Origin: Rebecca billardiae RCC1528
Lineage: Eukaryota; Protista; Haptophyta
Direction: 5' to 3'
DNA length: 64,000 nt
Assembly (NCBI GenBank): GCA_965240325.2
Contig: OZ251225.1
Location: 3,410,001 to 3,474,000, forward strand
Position 1 is the first letter of the stretch. Every line of letters starts with the position of its first letter. Under the pieces are notes generated by a model that was not told where the DNA came from, did not search any database, and saw only the letters and a program-made list of their open reading frames with translations. Below are positions 4,657 through 60,146 of this stretch, piece by piece. A program made the position numbers and the translations under genes.

Positions 4657-6897
4657 TCAATCGTCACCAGCATCGTCATCGGCGGCGGCGGCGCCCCGCG
4701 GTCGCTTGTGGCCGGAGCCGCCGCCGCCGCGGCGCACCTCGTAGAACTGCGGCGCAATCTCGGTCAGCCACTCCGGCTCGATCTTGCACACGTCGACCAT
4801 GGCCTCGTCGCCGGTCGTGAGCGTCTGCACCTCGTGAAACACCACCCACTCGGGCGGCGCGCGGTGCAGCACCGAGCGCGGGTGGATCACGAGGCGGCGC
4901 GCACTCCGCACGTCGCGGTAGCTGTTGTCCGTGTGCCGCCGCGCGGCGTGCGGGAAGAAGCCGCGCACGATCGTGCGCCGCAGCCGGTCGGTGTCCGAGC
5001 CGCACGACTCGCGCGCCACGCCGAAGCGCTTGAGGAAGCGCTCAAGCTGCGCGCGCACGTGCGTCGCGCGCGCGAGCACATGCGCGTCGAGCCCGCGGCG
5101 CGCCGCCCAGCGCGGCGCGCGCCCGCGGCGCTCCCACGCGCGGAGCACGTTTGCGAGCGTGACGTGGTCGCCCTCGTACACGGCGAAGTGCGCGCGCGCG
5201 CGCTCCTGCGCGCGCTGCGTCCCCGCGGCCCACACCGACTGCACCGACACGAGCGCGGCCACGTCGAGCGCCTCGCGCGCGCAGCCCTCCGCCTCGGCGC
5301 CGAGCAGCGCGCACGAGAGCATCGGCGAGGTGGGCAGCTCGGCCATCCGCTCGCCGAGCGGCGCGGTGAGCCGGCCGGCGTCGTCGATCGCGCCGAGCGC
5401 GTACAGCAGCTCGAGCGCGACGGCGAGGTGCGCCGCGGGCGGCGGCGTGGGCAGTTCGAAGCGCGCCACGTTGTCCACGCCGAGCGCCTTCAGCTGCAGC
5501 ACCAGCCCTTCGAGCGCGCACCTTTGCACGTCCGGCGCGGTCGCGGCCGCGAGGCCGTCGTGCGCGCCGCGCGTGTACAGGTGGTAGCACACGCCCGCGC
5601 GCGTGCGGCCGGCGCGGCCGGCGCGCTGCTTCGCCGCGGCGCGCGAGATCGGCGCGACCACCAGCGCCTCCCGCCCCGAGCGCACGTCAAAGACCTGCTG
5701 CTTGACAAAGCCGGAGTCGACCACGAACACGATACCGTCGATGGTCACCGATGTCTCCGCGATGTTGGTCGCGAGCACGACCTTGCGCGAGCCGCGCGGG
5801 GCGGGGGCGAAGGCGGCGAGCTGCGCGTCGCGCGAGAGCCCGCCGTGCAGCGGGACCACCGCGAGCCCGAGCGCGCCCGCGCCGCGGCCGCCATCCCTGC
5901 CGCCGCAGCCGCCGCGCCCAGCGGGCTTTTCCACAGCCGGGCGGAGCGCGCGCTCGCTGGCGTGCGTCTCGCGCGCGTGCTGCGCATCCGCCAGCATGCG
6001 CGCGGCCGCGTCGATCTCCTGCTGGCCGGTGAGGAACACCAGCACGTCGCCGCCGCCGGGCTGCTCCTCGTGGATGGCGAGCACGGTGCGCACGGCCTCG
6101 GTCACGTAGTCGGCGCACGGCGCGCTCAGGTAGCAGCGGTGCACGGCGTGCGCGCGCGCGCCGCTCACCGAGAGGATGCCGACGGGCGGGACGCGCCCGG
6201 CGCCGGCGGGCGCGGGCGCGCGGGTGCCGCCGTAGAACTCGGCGAGCTCCTCCGCGTCGAGCGTCGCCGACGCGATGATCAGCCGCAGCTCCCGCCGCCG
6301 CCGCTGGACCTTCTTGAGGAGCGCGAGGCACATGTCGGTCGTGACGCCGCGCTCGTGCGCCTCGTCGACCATGATGACGGCGTAGCGGCTGAGCAGCGGG
6401 TCCTGCAGCATCTCGCGCACGAGCGCGCCGTCCGTCATGTACTTGACGCGCGTGCGCTCGGGGTGCACGCGCACGTCGAAGCGCACCGCGTAGCCGACAG
6501 CGCCTTCGCCCACCGCCTCGCCCATCTCGTCCGCGACGCGCTCGGCGACCGAGATGGCGGCCACGCGCCGTGGCTGCGTGCACGCGACGAGGCGGCCGCC
6601 AGCGGTCCAGCCCGCCTCGTGCAGGTACTGCGGGATCTGCGTCGTCTTGCCGCAACCCGTGTGCCCGACGACGATCGTCGTCGCATGCGTCTCAACCATG
6701 TACAGCAGCTCGCGGCGCAGCGCAAACACGGGCAGCGCGAGGCGCTGCTGGGTGAGGCTGAGGCCCGTGCGCGGGTTGTAGAACGTGCCATGCTCGCCTT
6801 CGCGGGCCCGGTCGAGAGCGCCCGACACGGCCGGCCGCTGGCTGCCCGGCTGCCAGAACAGGTGCTTCCTGTCCGCGGGCTTGGCCGCGGCCGCCAT
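4657..6897 (-). CDS. DHX35: DEAH-box ATP-dependent RNA helicase DHX35
   Basis: N-terminal FWQPG...YNP..LSLTQQRLALPVF typical of DHX35; motifs GHTGCGKTT, TQPRRVAA, DEAHER, SAT, TNIAETSVT, QRAGRAGR; HA2/OB C-terminus. Confidence 0.92.
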   Translation of the reverse strand: MAAAAKPADRKHLFWQPGSQRPAVSGALDRAREGEHGTFYNPRTGLSLTQQRLALPVFALRRELLYMVETHATTIVVGHTGCGKTTQIPQYLHEAGWTAGGRLVACTQPRRVAAISVAERVADEMGEAVGEGAVGYAVRFDVRVHPERTRVKYMTDGALVREMLQDPLLSRYAVIMVDEAHERGVTTDMCLALLKKVQRRRRELRLIIASATLDAEELAEFYGGTRAPAPAGAGRVPPVGILSVSGARAHAVHRCYLSAPCADYVTEAVRTVLAIHEEQPGGGDVLVFLTGQQEIDAAARMLADAQHARETHASERALRPAVEKPAGRGGCGGRDGGRGAGALGLAVVPLHGGLSRDAQLAAFAPAPRGSRKVVLATNIAETSVTIDGIVFVVDSGFVKQQVFDVRSGREALVVAPISRAAAKQRAGRAGRTRAGVCYHLYTRGAHDGLAAATAPDVQRCALEGLVLQLKALGVDNVARFELPTPPPAAHLAVALELLYALGAIDDAGRLTAPLGERMAELPTSPMLSCALLGAEAEGCAREALDVAALVSVQSVWAAGTQRAQERARAHFAVYEGDHVTLANVLRAWERRGRAPRWAARRGLDAHVLARATHVRAQLERFLKRFGVARESCGSDTDRLRRTIVRGFFPHAARRHTDNSYRDVRSARRLVIHPRSVLHRAPPEWVVFHEVQTLTTGDEAMVDVCKIEPEWLTEIAPQFYEVRRGGGGSGHKRPRGAAAADDDAGDD

Positions 6898-6991
6898 CGT
6901 TGCAGATCTCCGCCTCGCTCGAGCCGCGAGCGCTCCGCGCTGCTGCGCTGGGTACTGCACGTGTTCGGTTTTTATTCGACGAAAATCAAGG

Positions 6992-51377: not shown

Positions 51378-53100
51378 TCAAGAGCGCCAAAACTTGAGCA
51401 TCTTGTCCTTACCACCCGAAGCGACCCGCTGGCCGTCGGGCGACCAGTCGACTGCGAACACCTCGTCAGCGTGGCCGGGCAGGTCGAACTTGAGCTTGCG
51501 CGTGCGCACCTCCCAGACCTTCATCGTCGAGTCGCGCGAGCCTGAGACGACCAGCCGCGAGTCTCCGGACCAGCCCACCTGGTACACTGGGCCGACGTGG
51601 CCGCGCAGCGCGCAGATGAACTTGCCGTCCGCGCCTTGCCACAGCCGCACCGAGCCATCGAAGGAGGCGCTCGCGAGCAGCCTGCCATCCGGGGAGAAGC
51701 TGATCGCGTTCACCGGCCGCTGGTGGCCCTGCAGCCGGCACACCGGCTTCTTGGTGCTGGCCGGCCGCCACAGGTACACGGTGAAGTCGTCCGAGCCGGA
51801 GGCGAGCAGCTCCCCGTCCGCGCCCTTGAGCTCGTCGTACTTGGCACGCGCCACCGCGGTGCGCGCCGCAAGGGTCGCTTCGCTCGGCATCTCTATGCCA
51901 GCGTCTGCCTTGCCACCGCCACGCCGCTTGCCATTCGGTGCGGGGGCGCTGTCGCCGTCCGTGGCGGCGGTGGCCTCCGCGGCCGGCTCGGCCGCAGCCG
52001 GAGCGGCCAACACTGCCCCTGCGGCGGCGGCAGCGCCGTCCCCTGCGCCCGCGTCTGGCCCCTGCGCGCTCTCGTCCGCGCCACGGTGGTTGAAGGTGCC
52101 CGTGCGCAGCGCGTGGTCCGTGCTGAGCGCGAGGCAGTTGACCCAGTGGCCATGGCCCTCGAGCGTGCGCGCCAGGATGCCGCTGCTCGCCACCCACACC
52201 TTGACGGTGCGGTCCTGCGAGCCTGCGGGGGACACGGCGCGGGTTGGGTGCGTGTCACTCGGCGCAGCCAGCGTGCCAGCCGCGCAACGCCGGGCCTGGG
52301 CCCGCGCAGAGGGCCCGCGCGGCGCGGCGCGGAACGGCGCGCGCAGTCGCGTGAACAGCACCTGAGTAGATGAGCCCCTCGCCGCCCCACTTGACGCACG
52401 TGACGGAGGCGGTGTGGCCCGAGAGCTGGTGCACGCACCGGCCGGTGCGCCAGTTCCACAGCTTGATCAGGAAGTCCTTCGACGCGGAGGCCAGCATGTC
52501 GCACCGCGGGTTGGCGTGCATCGGCTCCCATGCCACCGCCGTCACCCACTTGCGGTGGCCCGCGAGCCCGCCACCCGCCGCGCGGCCGCGCACGGCATCC
52601 CACACGAAGAGCGTGCCGTCCTTGCCGCCGGTGGCGAGCATGCGGCCGTCGGGTGACCAGCCCGTGCACAGCACCCAGTCGCGGTGCCCTCGCAGCGTGA
52701 AGCGCGGCGTCTCTGTGTGGATGTCCCACAGCCGCACAGTCGAGTCGCCTGAGCCGGTCGCGAGGTGGCGGCCGTCCGGCGAGAAGCACACGTGTAAGAT
52801 GGCGTCGGCGTGCCCGGCCAGGGTGCTCGTACACCTGGTGACTGATTTGACGCGGAAGACCGCCTGAGGCACGTACGTGATCGACACGACCTGCTCGGCA
52901 GACGCGCTACCCAGCGCATCGCCCACGCTGGTCACCACCTCCTCGTCGCCGACGTAGAATGAGTAGGGCAGCACCTCGTCGCTCTCGAGGAGGCGGTTGA
53001 CGATGAGCGTGAGCTCCTTCGCCGTCGTGCTGACCGGCATATCCAGCTGGGGCCCCATCGCCTCGCCCTCCGCCGAGCGGAACTTGCATATGAGGCTCAT
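51378..53100 (-). CDS. NLE1: Notchless/Rsa4 WD40 ribosome assembly factor; intron 52223-52361
   Basis: NLE domain (LPYSFYV...YVPQAVFRV), WD40 repeats GHADAIL, WEPMH, GHGHWVNCLALSTD, DLPGHADEVFAVDWSPDG. Confidence 0.95.
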
Positions 53101-53391: not shown

Positions 53392-56300
53392 TCAAAGGAT
53401 CGCGCATCGCTCGTGCTGGTACACGTACGCGAGCTCGCCCTCTTCAAACTGCTGCCCGTTGAGCGAGAGCTGCACGACGGCCGTGCCCGCGTCTGCGAAG
53501 CGCGGCGTGAGGAAGCGCACCTCCGACTCCGAGATGCGCGCGCCGGGCACGCACATCTGCACGCCGTGCAGCACGACGCGCACGGTGATCTCGGACGTGT
53601 CGGCAAAGCGCGCGCCGAGCAGGCGCACGGGCGTGCCGCCGCCGCTGCCGCCCTTGGCCGGCCGCAGGCGCTGCAGCAGCGGAGGCGCGTAGTAGCGGAT
53701 GCCGATGCTGAGCCGAGACTCCCCAGCCGCGTCCGCACCGCCAGCCACGCCGCACGAGCCGCAGAGCGCGGCCTCGGCCGCGCCGTGCGGGAGCGCGCCC
53801 GCGACGTCGTGCGCGCCCGCGTGCGCGCCGCGCCCGCCGCCGCCGCCGCCGCCCACGTTGCCGCCGCTGTGGCTTGCGGGCACGCCCGGCACGCACGGCG
53901 TGCGAGGCTCGGTCGCCGACGCGCCGCCGCCCGCGCCGCCCGCGCACGGCGTGCCGACCGGGGCCGGCGGCGGCTCAGAGCGCAGCGCAATCGTGAGCGT
54001 CGCCATGCCCGCGCCATGCGGCGCGGGCGGCAGCGCGCACCGCAGCTTGAAGTCGGACACGAACTCGGCGGGCACTGGCACGGCGGCGAGCGAGCCCGGC
54101 GCGATGGGCGTGCCGATGGCGTGCGGCGGGAGCGCCGCGGCGCTCGGCGGGCGCTCGCCGCGCGAGAGCCAAAGCGTCACCTGCCCGCGCCAGACCGCGC
54201 GGCCAAAGCCCTCGCCCGCGAGCGTGACGACGGTGCCACCGCGCACGGGCGCGCTCGCCGGCGAGACGCCGTGGATGGCCGTTGGGCGCGCGCCGAGCGC
54301 GCCCGCGTGGCCGAGGCCGCCGCCGCCGCCGCCCACGCTCGCCAGCTGCGGGAGGAGCCGCGCGACCGCGCGGTCCGTCGGCGAGAGCCCGCCCGCGCGC
54401 GTCGCGCCGCCGTACTTCCGCTCGAACTCGGCGTGCACCTTGCGCGCGTCGTCGAGCAGCAGCTCGGGCGTGTCGGGCGCGGCCGCCTGAACGCCCCACT
54501 TGAGCACGAGGAGGGCGTGCTCGGCGGTCACGGCGACGAGGAGGCGCTCGAAGCGGTCGTCGCGCGGGGCGGCGCCGGGCGGCCGCGCTGGGAGGAACGC
54601 GTCGAGCTGCGCGGTCGCCAGCGCGAGCATCGCGCAGTTCACCAGGCAGGAGGCCCACGCGACGAAGTCGAGGACGAGCGCCCACGAGTCGCCCGCGCCC
54701 AGGCCGCCCACGCGCACAGGGATCGGCCGCTGCGAGAGGGTCGAGAGCCGCACGGCGGCGCAGCGGATCTCGGCGGCGGCGCACAGCATGCACAGCAGTG
54801 GCGCGAGCGGCCAGACCACCGTGAACACGGTCGCATACCCGAACTGCAGCACGAGGCGCGCCGTGTCGAGGAACGGGTCGTACGGCGGCCGCGCCGCCTC
54901 GTCCAGCGCCGAGCCGTGCCACGCGAGGCCGACCACCGCGCGCGCGAGCCGCTGCAGGGTGGAGCGGCGCGGGCGCGCGCGGCGCGCGGGCGGCGCGCGC
55001 GGCGGCGGGAGCGGCGCGGGCGGCGTGCCGTCCTGCGCGCCGCGCGCGCGCGCGGGCGACTCGGCGGCTCGCCACCGCGGGCCGCGCTGCTGCAGGCCGG
55101 ACGGCGTCCCGTGCGCCGCGCCGCGCGAGGCGGCCGCGCGCGGGGGCGTGCGATCGGCGGGCGACTCGGGCGGACTCGCGCGCCCGCCGCTCGGGACGGA
55201 GACGTCGTCGGCTGAGGCGCTCGCGCGCACGCCGCCCGCGCGAGGCAGCGGCTGGTACGTGCCGCCACCCGTGCTCAGCCGGCTGAGCAGCGAGAGCGAG
55301 ATGCTCGAGAGCTCGCTGCCCACCGCGCCGCACGCGCCGCCGCGCGCCGCGCCTCCGCCTCCGGCCGCGCACGCGCCGCGCACGCCCCGAGGGAACCACC
55401 CGCTGCTGAGCGGCGGGGCGCGGCCCGCGCGCGCCGATGCGCGCCCCCGCGCGGCAGCTTTCTCCAAGTCGCGCACGCCGCCTGCGGGCATCCCGACCAC
55501 CTCGTCGTCCTCCTCGTCGTCTTCCTCGTCCTCGTCGTCGTCATCCTCGCCGCAGCTCGAGTCGGAGCAGGCGGCGGCGCGCGAGCGCGTGCGCACGGGC
55601 GGCGGGCGCGCTGGCTCGGCATCGAGCGGCTCAGCCGCCGTGGCGCACATCGAGGTAGCGCGGCAGCGGCGGCGGAGCGGGAGTTGGCTGACGAGCGCGC
55701 GCTCCTCGTCCTCGCCGCCCGCCAGCTGCGGCGTGCGCGGCGCGTGCTGCACGCCGGGCTCCGGCCCGGCGGCGCCCACCGAGGCCAAGTCGCCCCTCGA
55801 CGGCGCGCGATCGAACGGCGGCGGCGCCTCTGCGCGCGCACCCGGGGCCGACGGCTGCAGCAGCGCAGACGGCTGCTCGGCCAGGAAGGGCGGCGCGGCG
55901 CGCTGGAGCGCGCCGCCCGCGGCCGCGCCGTACGCCGCCGCGTGCGCCGCGGCGAAGACGGAGAGCGGCGCCGAGTTCGAGCGCAGCACCGGCGGCGACG
56001 GCGCGCTCGCCGGCACCGCGGCCGCGTCGGCCGCGACGGCGACCGGCCGCGGCCGCGGCGGCGTGGGGAACGCGCAGCGGCACGGGGAGAGCGAGCGCGG
56101 CTCGGACGCGGCGTCCGCGTCGTCGGAGGCGGAGGCGGCGTCGGCGCAGGTGGGCGCGGTGGGCGCGACGACCGCCGGCGCCGCGGTGAGCTGCGCGACG
56201 CGCATCGCCCAGCTCGCGAAGCGCCGCCAGCCCGAGCGCAGCGCGCGCGCGTCGGCGAGCTGCGCGCTCGGCGGCAGCAGCGCCGGCAGCACCACGGCGA

Positions 56301-57828
56301 CTGGCTGCCACACGCACGAGACGGCGAGGACGGAGACGACGGAGGTGACGAGCGCGCCACGCCACGTCTCGGCGTCGAAGTCCGCGCGGTGCAGCGCGAC
56401 GCTCCACAGCGTGTCCCCGAACGGGATGTGGAAGAAGGCGAGCAGGAAGAACCAGAGGAAGCCGTCAATAAAAAAGAAGGCTGACACCTTGAGCACGAGC
56501 GCGCGCTCAAACTCGCGCTCGGTCCGGTAGTTCTCCCACCGGTTGAGCGCGACGGCGAGGCGCATGAAGAGGCCAAAGTTGAGCAGCTCGACAAGGCAGC
56601 CCCACAGCAGCGAGAGCCCCGTCACCAGCGCCGACTTCACCAGCCGGTAGTGCGGCGAGAGGTGGATGGCGATCCAAGCAACGTACAGGGCAAACACGAT
56701 AGCCGTGAGCAGCAGCAGCTGCGTGAGCAGCACGGGCACCGTCACGCACAGCTTGAGCGAGCGGCGCCAGCGCACGTCGCGCAGCTCCTCGGCGCCGGTG
56801 AGGCGCGAGAGCACCCGCTGCCCGCGGAAGTCCGCGCGCACGCGCTCCGCCGGCGCGTTGGGCGGCAGCACGCCGTGGCCGCCCACGCGCGCCGGGCACA
56901 GCTCCTCCACTCGCCAGAGCGCGGCGAGCTCGCGCTGCTGCAGCCGCCACGACTCGAGGAAGGCGGTGGCCCAGAGCGAGATGCCGAGGCCGAAGAGCGG
57001 CTGCGCGATGGCGTGCGCGCCCGGCCACACCCACTTGAGCAGCCGGATCCCCACGCCCGCCGCCGCCGGCGCCGCCAGCCCGGCGGTGTAGTGGGTGGCG
57101 AACGCGAAATGGAACGCGACCTTCTCTCCGTGCACGTTGCGCAGCGCGTGCAGCTGGTGCGCGCGCAGCCGCCAGTGGCGGCAGAGGTGACGGACGAGCG
57201 AGGCGTTGAACGCGCGGTCGTGCACCGCGAACGGCGGGCACGCGAGCGCCAGCGCGCCGCCGTGCGAGCGTGACAGCTCGGCGCGGATGGCCGCACACAC
57301 CTCGGTCAGCACAGGCTCTGCGAGCGCGACGCGCCGGGCGGGCGTGAACGCGCTGTGCTCGAGCGAGGCGGCGCTGGGCACGAACTCTGCGCCGCCATGC
57401 GCGCGGGGGCCCTCGCGCAGCCACGCATCCAGCTCCTCGCGCACAGCCGCCGCGCGCAGCAGCTCGAGGCTCGGTCGGAGGAGCAGCAGCGCCGAACGCT
57501 GGCCCTCAGATGCGACCGCAGCCGCGGCCGAGCCGGCGCCCACACCACCCGCGAGGCCGAGCTCCGCGGAGGCGCCTTCGTCCTTCACGAGCTCGAAGCC
57601 GGCCTCGCGCAGCCGCGTGACCACCGTCTCCAGCGCCTCGTCCGCACCCGCCACCCGCGTCGGGCCGAAGAGGCGCGCAAACGAGAGGAAGTTCTTGGCG
57701 CGCGCAAACGTCGAGCCGGACGTGTCGTCGAGGATCAGTGCGAAGTCCGCGACGGCGCCGTCGGCATCCGCGCCATCGGCGCAGGCGGCGACGCTGATGG
57801 ATCGCGCGTAATGCCGCTCAGCGAACAT
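53392..57828 (-). CDS. anoctamin/TMEM16 family protein with two C-terminal IPT/TIG domains and CAAX box
   Basis: LRNVHGEKVAFHFAF, LNRWENYRTEREFE..LVLK, QFGYATVFTVVWPLAP..EIR..QRP, AEH..LK; IPT motifs VSPASAPVRGGTVVTLAGEGF and LRPAKGGSGGGTPVRLLGARF...VQLSLNGQQF; ends CAIL*. Confidence 0.88.
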   Translation of the reverse strand: MFAERHYARSISVAACADGADADGAVADFALILDDTSGSTFARAKNFLSFARLFGPTRVAGADEALETVVTRLREAGFELVKDEGASAELGLAGGVGAGSAAAAVASEGQRSALLLLRPSLELLRAAAVREELDAWLREGPRAHGGAEFVPSAASLEHSAFTPARRVALAEPVLTEVCAAIRAELSRSHGGALALACPPFAVHDRAFNASLVRHLCRHWRLRAHQLHALRNVHGEKVAFHFAFATHYTAGLAAPAAAGVGIRLLKWVWPGAHAIAQPLFGLGISLWATAFLESWRLQQRELAALWRVEELCPARVGGHGVLPPNAPAERVRADFRGQRVLSRLTGAEELRDVRWRRSLKLCVTVPVLLTQLLLLTAIVFALYVAWIAIHLSPHYRLVKSALVTGLSLLWGCLVELLNFGLFMRLAVALNRWENYRTEREFERALVLKVSAFFFIDGFLWFFLLAFFHIPFGDTLWSVALHRADFDAETWRGALVTSVVSVLAVSCVWQPVAVVLPALLPPSAQLADARALRSGWRRFASWAMRVAQLTAAPAVVAPTAPTCADAASASDDADAASEPRSLSPCRCAFPTPPRPRPVAVAADAAAVPASAPSPPVLRSNSAPLSVFAAAHAAAYGAAAGGALQRAAPPFLAEQPSALLQPSAPGARAEAPPPFDRAPSRGDLASVGAAGPEPGVQHAPRTPQLAGGEDEERALVSQLPLRRRCRATSMCATAAEPLDAEPARPPPVRTRSRAAACSDSSCGEDDDDEDEEDDEEDDEVVGMPAGGVRDLEKAAARGRASARAGRAPPLSSGWFPRGVRGACAAGGGGAARGGACGAVGSELSSISLSLLSRLSTGGGTYQPLPRAGGVRASASADDVSVPSGGRASPPESPADRTPPRAAASRGAAHGTPSGLQQRGPRWRAAESPARARGAQDGTPPAPLPPPRAPPARRARPRRSTLQRLARAVVGLAWHGSALDEAARPPYDPFLDTARLVLQFGYATVFTVVWPLAPLLCMLCAAAEIRCAAVRLSTLSQRPIPVRVGGLGAGDSWALVLDFVAWASCLVNCAMLALATAQLDAFLPARPPGAAPRDDRFERLLVAVTAEHALLVLKWGVQAAAPDTPELLLDDARKVHAEFERKYGGATRAGGLSPTDRAVARLLPQLASVGGGGGGLGHAGALGARPTAIHGVSPASAPVRGGTVVTLAGEGFGRAVWRGQVTLWLSRGERPPSAAALPPHAIGTPIAPGSLAAVPVPAEFVSDFKLRCALPPAPHGAGMATLTIALRSEPPPAPVGTPCAGGAGGGASATEPRTPCVPGVPASHSGGNVGGGGGGGRGAHAGAHDVAGALPHGAAEAALCGSCGVAGGADAAGESRLSIGIRYYAPPLLQRLRPAKGGSGGGTPVRLLGARFADTSEITVRVVLHGVQMCVPGARISESEVRFLTPRFADAGTAVVQLSLNGQQFEEGELAYVYQHERCAIL

Positions 57829-57932
57829 CAAGGACGTCTCGGCTCACGGGCATCCGGACGCCATGCTGCGTCCGCAGGTCGGCGAGCGGCCGCGCTGCCC
57901 GCAGCGCGGGCCCATCCGCGACGACGCGGACG

Positions 57933-58487
57933 ATGGCGACCCTTCCGAGCGCCGACCTCTTGGAGCACCTGGAGATGCCGCAATGCGAGTGCCTGAACGA
58001 GGCGAAGGAGCACACGCTACACCACTGCCTCAAGCAGGGCCTACGAGATCAGTCGACGCTCTACCTGCAGTCGGACTGCGACGAGGAGCTCTTGATCTCG
58101 CTGCAGTTCATGTCGCCTGTGCGGATTGCGTCGATCAAGATCGAGGGCCCTGCTGACCAGGCGCCGTCGGCGATGCGATTGTTCGTGAATAAGATCGGCC
58201 TCGACTTTGACTCGGCGAAGACGGAGGCGCCGACCCAAGAGCTCAAGCTCTCCGAGGCTGACGTCGAGGAGGGCGGCAAGGCGGTGGAGCTGCGGTATGT
58301 GCTCTTCCAGAACGTGCAACGCCTCACGCTCTTCATCCCGGGTAACTTTGGAGGCGGCGACGAGACGGTGATCACAAAGCTGGTGCTTCTCGGCACACCA
58401 ATCGTGCACGAGGGGCTCAAGCGCTCCAAAGACGAGCAGGACAAGGCGACCAAGGGCGACTGGCTGGGCTCCGGCGGCGTGGCGTGA
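57933..58487 (+). CDS. PITH domain protein (TXNL1 C-terminal-like)
   Basis: QCECLNE, YLQSDCDEELLI, LFVN..LDFD, LRYVLFQNVQRLTLFI..N.GG.DET.I. Confidence 0.9.
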   Translation: MATLPSADLLEHLEMPQCECLNEAKEHTLHHCLKQGLRDQSTLYLQSDCDEELLISLQFMSPVRIASIKIEGPADQAPSAMRLFVNKIGLDFDSAKTEAPTQELKLSEADVEEGGKAVELRYVLFQNVQRLTLFIPGNFGGGDETVITKLVLLGTPIVHEGLKRSKDEQDKATKGDWLGSGGVA

Positions 58488-58994: not shown

Positions 58995-60146
58995 ATGGCA
59001 CCCGCTTTCTTCGCTCCGCCTGGATGCGCCTCTAGGGAGTGGGCTCCGCAAGACTGGGCGGCCGAGGTCATCCGCGAGTACGCAGATGAGCGTGCCACGC
59101 TACTTGCACGCTTCCAATCGCTCACGCCGGATGTGGCCGACGCCCTGGGCCTAAACGCGAGCATGCAGCAGCTGGTGACGGCGTCGGAGGCAAACGAGCG
59201 AGCGCTCAGGAGCATGCTCCGCTTGCCGCCCTGCGTGCACGCTCTTAGCATGGCGGACACGCCTTTCGTGCCACGTAGCGCTGCATGTGGCCGTCGAGGC
59301 GATGCGGGCACCGCGTACACGCGAGCGCGCGACGTGCTCTCGCTCTTGGTCCGCGACTGGGGCCCAGACCCGGCAGCGCGAAGACTCGCCGCTCAGCTCG
59401 TCGGGCTCCTGACACGCTTCCTTCCGCCGGCGAGCTCGCACGTGCATGTGCCCGCTGCAGGTGCTTGCGGTCTTGCGTACGCACTCGCCGCTCGCGGCTT
59501 CCGTGTTGATGCCAGCGACGCTTCCCTGCCGGTGCTCGCAGCAGCGTACTCTGTGCTGAGCGGTGCACGCGAGCGCGTGCATCCACTCGCGCACGCGGAC
59601 GCCGATCTGTGGCGTCGAGCTGACGTGCAGCTTGGGACGCCAATACACGCACGGAGACTAGGAGGGGCTGCCCTTCGCCGCCTCACGCTGCAACCCGCGC
59701 CGTTCCCCGAAACCGTGCTTGGCAACCACATCGATGCGATCGTAACACATTTTGCCATTGATGCCTTGCCTGCATCTGTGGCCGAGACAGTCGGGCACAT
59801 CGCCAACACACTGCGCCCAGGAGGCGTGTGGCTGAACGCAGGGCCGCTGCTATATCACTCTGACTCGCAGCCGCCATTGACGCACGACGAGCTGCTCACT
59901 CTCGTGCGCCACCGCAACATGAGCGTGCGCTTGCGACGAACAGCACACGTGCGAGCCTATGATCCGGAGCCGAGGGCGGCAACACTTTTTGGCGTTCAAA
60001 GCTTTCTCGGGTTTGGAAGGCTTCTGCGAGCGCTCGTGTGCGTGGCGCAATCCGTGCGCTCCCTTCCACCTGAGGCGTGCGCGTCATCCGCGCTGATGTC
60101 CTCGCGCAGCTATGACATTGGGGTGTTTGTCGCAGTGCGCCAGTGA
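58995..60146 (+). CDS. N2227-like SAM-dependent methyltransferase (carnosine N-methyltransferase family)
   Basis: LVRDWG, VHVPAAGACGLAYALA, DAIVTHFAID, LRPGGVWLNAGPLLYH. Confidence 0.82.
   Translation: MAPAFFAPPGCASREWAPQDWAAEVIREYADERATLLARFQSLTPDVADALGLNASMQQLVTASEANERALRSMLRLPPCVHALSMADTPFVPRSAACGRRGDAGTAYTRARDVLSLLVRDWGPDPAARRLAAQLVGLLTRFLPPASSHVHVPAAGACGLAYALAARGFRVDASDASLPVLAAAYSVLSGARERVHPLAHADADLWRRADVQLGTPIHARRLGGAALRRLTLQPAPFPETVLGNHIDAIVTHFAIDALPASVAETVGHIANTLRPGGVWLNAGPLLYHSDSQPPLTHDELLTLVRHRNMSVRLRRTAHVRAYDPEPRAATLFGVQSFLGFGRLLRALVCVAQSVRSLPPEACASSALMSSRSYDIGVFVAVRQ

Follow-up and report, generated by a model that had tools for sequence, protein, structure and literature searches.

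What does a TMEM16 protein (anoctamin) do when its classic Ca2+ site has been dismantled and its C-terminus carries a pair of immunoglobulin-like (Ig-like) IPT/TIG domains and a prenylation signal? The question is raised by a gene in a 64,000-nucleotide stretch of DNA from the haptophyte Rebecca billardiae RCC1528 (assembly GCA_965240325.2, contig OZ251225.1, positions 3,410,001 to 3,474,000 of the forward strand), which is analysed here as a whole and called the window. As judged from the list of open reading frames (ORFs) and from GC content by codon position, positions 53392..57828 on the minus strand hold a complete single-exon coding sequence for a TMEM16-TIG-TIG-CaaX protein of 1478 amino acids followed by a stop codon. 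It belongs to a clade of orthologues in which every named member is a haptophyte (from Prymnesium, Chrysochromulina, Chrysotila, or Pavlovales sp. CCMP2436, the last being the closest named relative), the remainder being environmental sequences. The answer that we consider probable, on the basis of alignments and models, is that the protein would be a scramblase-type TMEM16 of the endomembrane system that works without the classic Ca2+ switch and whose prenylated TIG tail is pinned on a membrane.

The family assignment made in the earlier note on this DNA is upheld. The Pfam family Anoctamin (PF04547) is matched with 230.6 bits (cut-off 28; E 4.5e-68), the match being interrupted once, by the loop between transmembrane helices 6 and 7 (TM6 and TM7). 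Among the relatives of solved structure, nhTMEM16 (profile E ~1e-51), afTMEM16 (3.5e-49), and TMEM16K (2e-42) come first, followed by the weaker matches TMEM16F (~4e-32), TMEM16A (~2e-21), and Ist2 (~6e-9). The N-terminal cytosolic domain (residues 1-229, 57142..57828; this and all further features of the gene lie on the minus strand) aligns to the corresponding domain of nhTMEM16 and afTMEM16 and is modelled in an orthologue with a predicted local distance difference test score (pLDDT) >90. It is followed by the TM1-TM6 half (residues 230-515, 56284..57141), which is the best stretch of the Pfam match, and by the TM7-TM10 half (residues 976-1117, 54478..54903), aligned by hidden Markov model (HMM) to residues 491-633 of the nhTMEM16 structure 4wis. 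The AlphaFold model of the Prymnesium parvum orthologue P0001, which is 47% identical to the window protein over the aligned columns, was built on a 121-row alignment and has a predicted template modelling score (pTM) of 0.70, most of the membrane core being modelled with pLDDT >90. Foldseek matched this model to nhTMEM16, afTMEM16, and TMEM16K with E ~1e-23 and target-normalised template modelling scores of 0.66-0.78, so that the ten-helix TMEM16 fold with its N-terminal cytosolic domain is borne out on the orthologue. The membrane core is strongly conserved in the clade, with invariant WEN..T, FGY, WPLAPL, and E.R motifs. By profile and by fold, the protein is a TMEM16/anoctamin of the fungal-scramblase/TMEM16K type. 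It shares the N-terminal cytosolic domain, the ten-helix core, and the C-terminal helix with nhTMEM16/afTMEM16 and with TMEM16K/ANO10; it differs from them by the replacement of four of the six Ca2+ ligands, with a basic residue at the E506 position, and, as a clade, by a far longer TM6-TM7 loop (193-528 amino acids between the HIPF and FGY motifs) and by the TIG-TIG-CaaX tail.

The state of the Ca2+ site was read in the numbering of nhTMEM16 (4wis), in which D503, E506, E535, and D539 fall at their published places and R432 and A444 correspond to residues named in deposited mutants. The TM7 segment of the window protein is FLDTARLVLQFGY (residues 986-998, 54835-54873) and the TM8 segment is CAAAEIRCAA (residues 1016-1025, 54754-54783). 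In the profile alignment to 4wis, D503 is kept as D988 and E535 as E1020, whereas E506 is replaced by R991, N531/N532 by C1016/A1017, and D539 by A1024. The earlier note had thus correctly described the exchange of the second acidic ligand of TM7 for Arg and the loss of Asn and Asp from TM8, and its view of the site as degenerate stands; however, it understated the extent of the degeneration, as the TM6 ligands are lost too, N448 being replaced by Q508 and E452 by V512. TM6 (residues 489-520, 56269-56364) was left unaligned by HMMER, and the two TM6 positions were assigned by aligning the TM5-TM7 region with canonical homologues, among them P0072, which runs residue-for-residue onto TM6 of nhTMEM16. 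Independently of any alignment, residues 489-525 contain not a single Asp or Glu. Altogether, only two of the six classic ligands (N448, E452, D503, E506, E535, and D539) are retained, and the acidic and polar ligands on TM6, TM7, and TM8 that characterise Ca2+-activated TMEM16 proteins are not present as a set.

The same picture is repeated across the clade. In every orthologue examined, TM7 reads L-D-x-A-[R/K/H], TM8 reads E-x-R-x-[A/S/T], and TM6 is free of acidic residues; the equivalents of D988 and E1020 are kept throughout. Most canonical matches of the same profile search, in contrast, retain D-x-x-E and NN-x-x-E-x-R-x-D. In these alignments the degenerate Ca2+ site is a character of the clade, and the presence of a basic residue where E506 would stand hints at an intrinsic counter-charge to D988 and E1020. 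Because no ligands but the equivalents of D503 and E535 are left, with a basic residue in place of E506, Ca2+ at the classic site most likely does not gate the membrane module. Two points weigh against this conclusion, both concerning TM6: its alignment depends on transitivity in MAFFT and not on structure, and the orthologue model is moderately confident there, with pLDDT of about 60-70. Absence of Ca2+ ligands was also seen in a second, unrelated group of anoctamins (P0031, P0036, and P0067), which has D-x-x-V on TM7, Lys for Glu on TM8, Ala for Glu on TM6, and a Cys-rich extracellular insert between TM5 and TM6.

TM6 and TM7 are joined by a disordered loop of 455 amino acids (54904..56268), rich in Ala, Pro, Arg, Ser, and Gly. 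This loop is cytosolic in all TMEM16 structures. The HIPF-to-FGY span that contains it measures 528 amino acids in the window protein versus 193-312 in the orthologues, and the corresponding gap in nhTMEM16 amounts to a few dozen residues only. No Pfam domain was found in the loop, and it is predicted to be disordered in the orthologue model. Three islands recur within it in the orthologues: a Ser/Asp patch (DSDSD, SSGSDDD, or SEGSDDDD), an amphipathic S-L-x-S-L-L-x-R-(R/K)-L motif, and a basic helix running into TM7. In the window protein the first island corresponds to an expanded Ser/Asp/Glu patch at residues 754-776 (55501..55569), identified in the loop alignment, and the second to a candidate amphipathic helix at residues 840-851 (55276..55311), placed there by alignment to the orthologue motif only. 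The patch includes the acidic run EDDDDEDEEDDEEDDE (residues 761-776, 55501-55548), composed of 16 Asp/Glu residues and encoded by a TCG/CCT triplet repeat at 55500-55549; as the comparison with the orthologues indicates, the run is an expansion of the conserved Ser/Asp island by means of this triplet repeat. An imperfect (GC)n / 47-nucleotide repeat also lies within the coding part of the loop (54961-55058). The loop seems to grow in length by repeat expansion, and its Ser/Asp patch is a candidate site of regulation.

The acidic insert had been compared in the earlier note to the tails of ANO8/Ist2-type tethers. The Asp/Glu run itself is present, but the likeness to a tether tail does not hold, since the run is located in the TM6-TM7 loop and only its short Ser/Asp patch is conserved. 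ANO8 (TMEM16H), an intracellular anoctamin, contains low-complexity acidic sequence and has been proposed as a tether linking the endoplasmic reticulum (ER) with the plasma membrane, and its acidic disorder is found in the C-terminal tail; the window protein differs from it, as far as this general description goes, in carrying its acidic sequence between TM6 and TM7. Another role for the insert would be Ca2+ control through a different site, with the acidic loop or a third site of the TM2-TM10 type acting as a low-affinity sensor. The 16 Asp/Glu residues in the loop between the gating helix TM6 and its neighbour TM7 would fit such a sensor, as would the retention of D988 and E1020 in all orthologues. 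However, the Ser/Asp patch of the orthologues is short (5-8 residues) and resembles a phospho-acidic motif, four of the six ligands are gone, and the pocket of every member holds a basic residue; we consider Ca2+ control of this kind quite unlikely.

The second addition to the TMEM16 core is the tail. TM10 is followed by cytosolic helices and a linker (residues 1118-1183, 54280..54477) with a conserved PELLLDDA...KY motif, by the first IPT/TIG domain (residues 1184-1280, 53989..54279), by a disordered Gly/Ala/Pro linker (residues 1281-1373, 53710..53988; pLDDT <50), and by the second IPT/TIG domain (residues 1374-1471, 53416..53709). The Pfam family TIG (PF01833) is matched with 48.6 bits (cut-off 20.9) in two stretches, one corresponding to the first domain and the other covering residues 1383-1469 of the second. 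An AlphaFold2 model of residues 1093-1478, built on a 10-row alignment, contains two helices after TM10, then a disordered stretch before the first TIG domain, and gives the two domains pLDDT of 81-90 and 87-95, respectively; the first domain carries a disordered internal insertion of 21 amino acids. Foldseek matched the tail model to the IPT domains of MET/plexin and to domains of EBF and NF-kB with E from ~1e-8 to 1e-5. HMM and model agree that the Ig-like E-set fold is present twice in the tail, and the tandem that had been placed approximately at 54000-54290 and 53400-53700 matches the modelled domains and lies on the same polypeptide as the membrane core. A search of the ESM Atlas with the tail returned generic TIG clusters only, with sub-threshold scores. 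The second TIG domain is 71% identical to that of Pavlovales sp. CCMP2436, which makes a pavlovophyte the likely source of the DNA. The linker between the domains, ~93 amino acids in the window protein and also present in the Pavlovales transcript P0024, is nearly absent from Prymnesium, where ~17 amino acids precede the first domain and ~8 separate the two. Thus both Ig domains are conserved and the length of the spacer is not.

The cytosolic and nuclear IPT/TIG domains of EBF and NF-kB are dimerisation modules, and their presence among the structural matches brings up a scaffold that no longer transports anything: the TMEM16 fold would serve as a dimeric platform that displays the TIG domains, for instance for docking or dimerisation of cytosolic partners. 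TM6 is compatible with a loss of transport: it is Pro-rich, shows poor conservation when set against canonical members, and is less confidently modelled. On the other hand, the strong conservation of the membrane core within the clade and the fact that the nearest relatives are proven scramblases are not what a dead module would lead one to expect, and Ist2, in which the site is similarly degenerate, was reported to be an active scramblase (PMC12617493). We therefore regard a transport-dead scaffold as very unlikely.

The polypeptide ends with the CaaX box CAIL (residues 1475-1478, 53395..53406), read directly before the stop codon. It starts just past the modelled boundary of the second TIG domain (residue 1471), with three residues in between, and possesses both the Cys four residues from the C-terminus and an aliphatic residue at the a2 position. 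The terminus recognised in the earlier note is not peculiar to the window protein, since a CaaX box is kept in nine further divergent orthologous lineages. The endings include CTIM in P. parvum P0001, CAIA in the metagenome contig L001 (read in the correct frame), CAVQ in P0007, CAVQ and in one member CVVQ in the Chrysochromulina parva cluster, CAVQ in Chrysotila carterae P0048, CELL in P0017, CAIV in the Pavlovales transcript P0024, and CVIS in P0199. The Cys at position -4 is invariant in all these lineages, the ending conforms to C-[ATEV]-[IVL]-X, and a2 is Ile, Val, or Leu throughout, while tail identity is just 34-53% and the residues before the Cys differ (HER, SMS, ASL, PLN, SRA, APA, AVQ). 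Because the Cys is invariant despite such divergent neighbours, the box is very likely a selected prenylation signal, and its variable last residue (L, M, Q, A, S, or V) suggests that either isoprenoid would be acceptable. In contig L001 the relevant region (6500-6979) has a coverage of ~1 and the called protein P0002 is frame-shifted; the second TIG domain and CAIA are found in another frame (ORF 6686-6979).

Both termini of TMEM16 proteins are cytosolic. Because of this established topology and of the alignment through TM10, the C-terminus of the window protein is taken as cytosolic, which would leave the CaaX box on the side accessible to prenyltransferases. Neither a polybasic run nor an extra Cys was found upstream of the box in any aligned orthologue. 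CaaX proteins without a polybasic or second lipid signal tend to reside on endomembranes rather than at the plasma membrane, and the composition of the tail favours anchoring on an endomembrane. B-type lamins, which are soluble coiled-coil proteins, likewise have an Ig-fold tail domain close to a farnesylated CaaX box that holds the protein on a membrane. This is an analogy and not a homology, the lamin-tail Ig fold being distinct from IPT/TIG.

The same tail could instead reach across to another membrane. The TMEM16 module would then reside in the ER, as that of yeast Ist2, with the prenylated TIG tail inserted into an apposed membrane (the plasma membrane, the plastid ER, or another organelle), and scrambling would support lipid transfer at the resulting contact site. 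Even in Prymnesium, where the tail is short, two rigid Ig domains with their linkers could span ~15-20 nm, by a rough estimate from general dimensions of Ig domains and contact sites. A CAAX motif functionally substitutes for the plasma-membrane-binding end of Ist2 (PMC12617493), and the addition of CAAX to intracellular TMEM16 proteins sends them to the plasma membrane (PMC7312528). The engineered constructs, however, carried a K-Ras-type polybasic CAAX, whereas no orthologue has a polybasic stretch or a second Cys before its own; the linker varies from ~93 amino acids in the window protein to ~8 in Prymnesium; and the disordered acidic insert belongs to the TM6-TM7 loop and not to the tail. 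Ist2 resembles the window protein in combining a TMEM16 fold, for which Ca2+-independent scrambling has been reported, with a device for membrane attachment on its cytosolic C-terminal tail. It differs in its weak sequence match, given above, and in the nature of the tail, which is a long disordered linker with a lipid-binding end in Ist2 and two folded Ig domains here; the CaaX box of the window protein is natural, lacks a basic patch, and is reached through short or variable linkers. A long disordered C-terminal linker leading to a basic or amphipathic lipid-binding end, as in Ist2/ANO8-type tethers, is not found. The engineered TMEM16E/H/J/K-CFP-CAAX proteins also end with CaaX, and in them the lipid signal sets the location (PMC7312528), but they are artificial and polybasic, in contrast to the natural, haptophyte-conserved box of the window protein. 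We therefore consider it unlikely, if worth keeping in mind, that the protein is a haptophyte contact-site machine made of a Ca2+-independent ER scramblase and an Ig arm prenyl-anchored in a second membrane. If true, such a machine would be an independently arisen counterpart of Ist2 with a folded spacer of fixed length in place of a disordered one.

The local DNA is 70-80% GC, and because of this long ORFs are cheap here; the gene was therefore tested by its coding periodicity, measured as GC content at the third codon position (GC3), and not by ORF length. The open frame extends from 57831 to 53392, with the first ATG at 57828, which yields the product of 1478 amino acids, and the N-terminus is collinear from Met1 with that of the Prymnesium orthologue. 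Over the whole coding sequence GC at codon positions 1/2/3 is 0.78/0.60/0.94. GC3 is 0.89-0.98 across all coding segments versus 0.57-0.77 in the flanking non-coding DNA: 0.89 in the N-terminal domain, 0.94 in TM1-6, 0.95 in the TM6-TM7 loop, 0.96 in TM7-10, 0.94 in the first TIG domain, 0.92 in the inter-TIG linker, and 0.93 in the second TIG domain. A local minimum of 0.67-0.83 covers ~12 codons at residues 97-114. The high-GC position shifts with the frame offset, and the periodicity favours the annotated frame alone. ORFs of 600, 676, 474, and 439 amino acids in other frames overlap the gene (53413-56530, on the plus strand and others). Because the periodicity backs only the annotated frame, these ORFs are by-products of GC content. 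In-frame introns were considered in the TM6-TM7 loop, in the inter-TIG linker, and in a 20-amino-acid N-terminal insertion, and were rejected, as GC3 is at least 0.89 in each named segment.

A separate gene for the TIG part was likewise rejected, because the orthologues hold anoctamin and TIG on one protein. In P. parvum P0001 (1044 amino acids, NCBI) both are found in a single product, P0007 extends from TM5 to the C-terminus with both parts in one protein, and P0202, a genome model of Pavlovales sp. CCMP2436, joins TM7 to the second TIG domain. The nearly identical transcriptome contig P0024 of the same organism runs from TM10 through the first TIG domain, a long Gly/Ala linker, and the second TIG domain to the CaaX box and stop. 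As this mRNA-derived sequence covers everything from TM10 to CaaX, the fusion is not an artefact of gene modelling, and the separate IPT transcript that the earlier note had allowed for is not what these sequences describe. The explanation that the ORF is a by-product of ~75% GC, with its parts being separate genes or with introns read through, could appeal to the many overlapping ORFs of 200-676 amino acids in other frames and to a look-up of sequencing runs, which listed none of RNA for this genome. However, GC3 of 0.92-0.98 in loop, linker, and domains, confined to the annotated frame and dropping to 0.57-0.77 in the flanks, together with P0001, P0007, P0202, and P0024, leaves this explanation highly improbable and already largely refuted. 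The deposited P0202 model omits several short stretches, and unrelated terminal residues replace the ...VHERCAIV of P0024 (MMETSP); to judge from the two sequences, P0202 appears to be mis-spliced at its last exon, hiding the CaaX box.

The gene is closely flanked on both sides. A PITH-domain gene (57933-58487, plus strand; Pfam PITH E 1.8e-46) is divergent from it; as only ~105 bp (57829-57932) lie between the anoctamin start codon and this neighbour, the bidirectional promoter must be very compact and the 5' untranslated regions tiny. A Notchless/NLE1 homologue with NLE and WD40 repeats (51378-53100, minus strand) begins ~290 bp downstream of the anoctamin stop codon. Its frame switches between ~52220 and ~52360, as a single short intron would explain; since the Notchless frame changes, introns do occur in this genome, whereas the 4.4-kb anoctamin gene shows none. 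Finally, an ORF similar to carnosine N-methyltransferase (CARME) is located at 58995-60146 (plus strand; E 7e-14). No functional hint was found by Pfam in the PITH, Notchless, and CARME-like neighbours.

An exhaustive profile search yielded 6993 relatives, and members of the clade score 270-1170 bits versus ~245 bits for the best canonical full-length anoctamin among the matches listed. For a survey of TIG domains, HMMs of the two domains were run against 200 proteins, comprising 150 listed matches of the exhaustive search together with earlier matches and cluster members. Among these 200 proteins, the combination of anoctamin with TIG occurs only in this clade; the other TIG matches are three giant TIG-repeat proteins, which are not anoctamins. 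Automatic annotation already displays the pair: P0001 has both Pfam families under the UniRef name 'Anoctamin', and P0048 is annotated as 'IPT/TIG domain-containing protein'. In the literature searched, no paper was found that combines an anoctamin with a TIG domain or deals with natural prenylation of a TMEM16 protein, and on haptophyte TMEM16 the sole match was an unrelated review of ER ultrastructure. Within that literature, the anoctamin-TIG-CaaX protein is an undescribed form of a known family.

We return to the reading that we favour, the endomembrane scramblase with a prenylated tail. With the classic two-Ca2+ site dismantled, Arg, Lys, or His at the E506 position could neutralise the acids equivalent to D503 and E535, and the module, if it transports at all, would be a lipid scramblase or a leak pathway in an endomembrane, either constitutive or under some other control. 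Regulation or positioning would have shifted to cytosolic additions specific to the clade, namely the long disordered TM6-TM7 loop with its conserved Ser/Asp patch and amphipathic helix, and the C-terminal IPT/TIG pair with a CaaX box within a few residues of it. Prenylation of the CaaX Cys, assuming the host prenyltransferases, would hold the second TIG domain flat against the surface of a membrane, by default the one in which the protein itself resides (in cis), because there is no second signal for the plasma membrane. Parts of this mechanism are made plausible by precedents: Ist2 is a Ca2+-independent scramblase whose membrane-binding end can be replaced by a CAAX motif (PMC12617493), and TMEM16E/H/J/K are relocated to the plasma membrane by added CAAX (PMC7312528).

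The clade thus appears to have discarded the Ca2+ switch of a family usually studied for its Ca2+-gated channels and scramblases, placed a basic residue in the pocket, and added an Ig tail predicted to be naturally prenylated. The intron-less compact gene would lend itself to direct expression. The protein may serve as a natural test case for what keeps Ca2+-independent TMEM16 proteins like Ist2 active or regulates them, and for whether lipid-anchored tails position scramblases, an arrangement that has so far been imitated by artificial CAAX tags (PMC7312528, PMC12617493).

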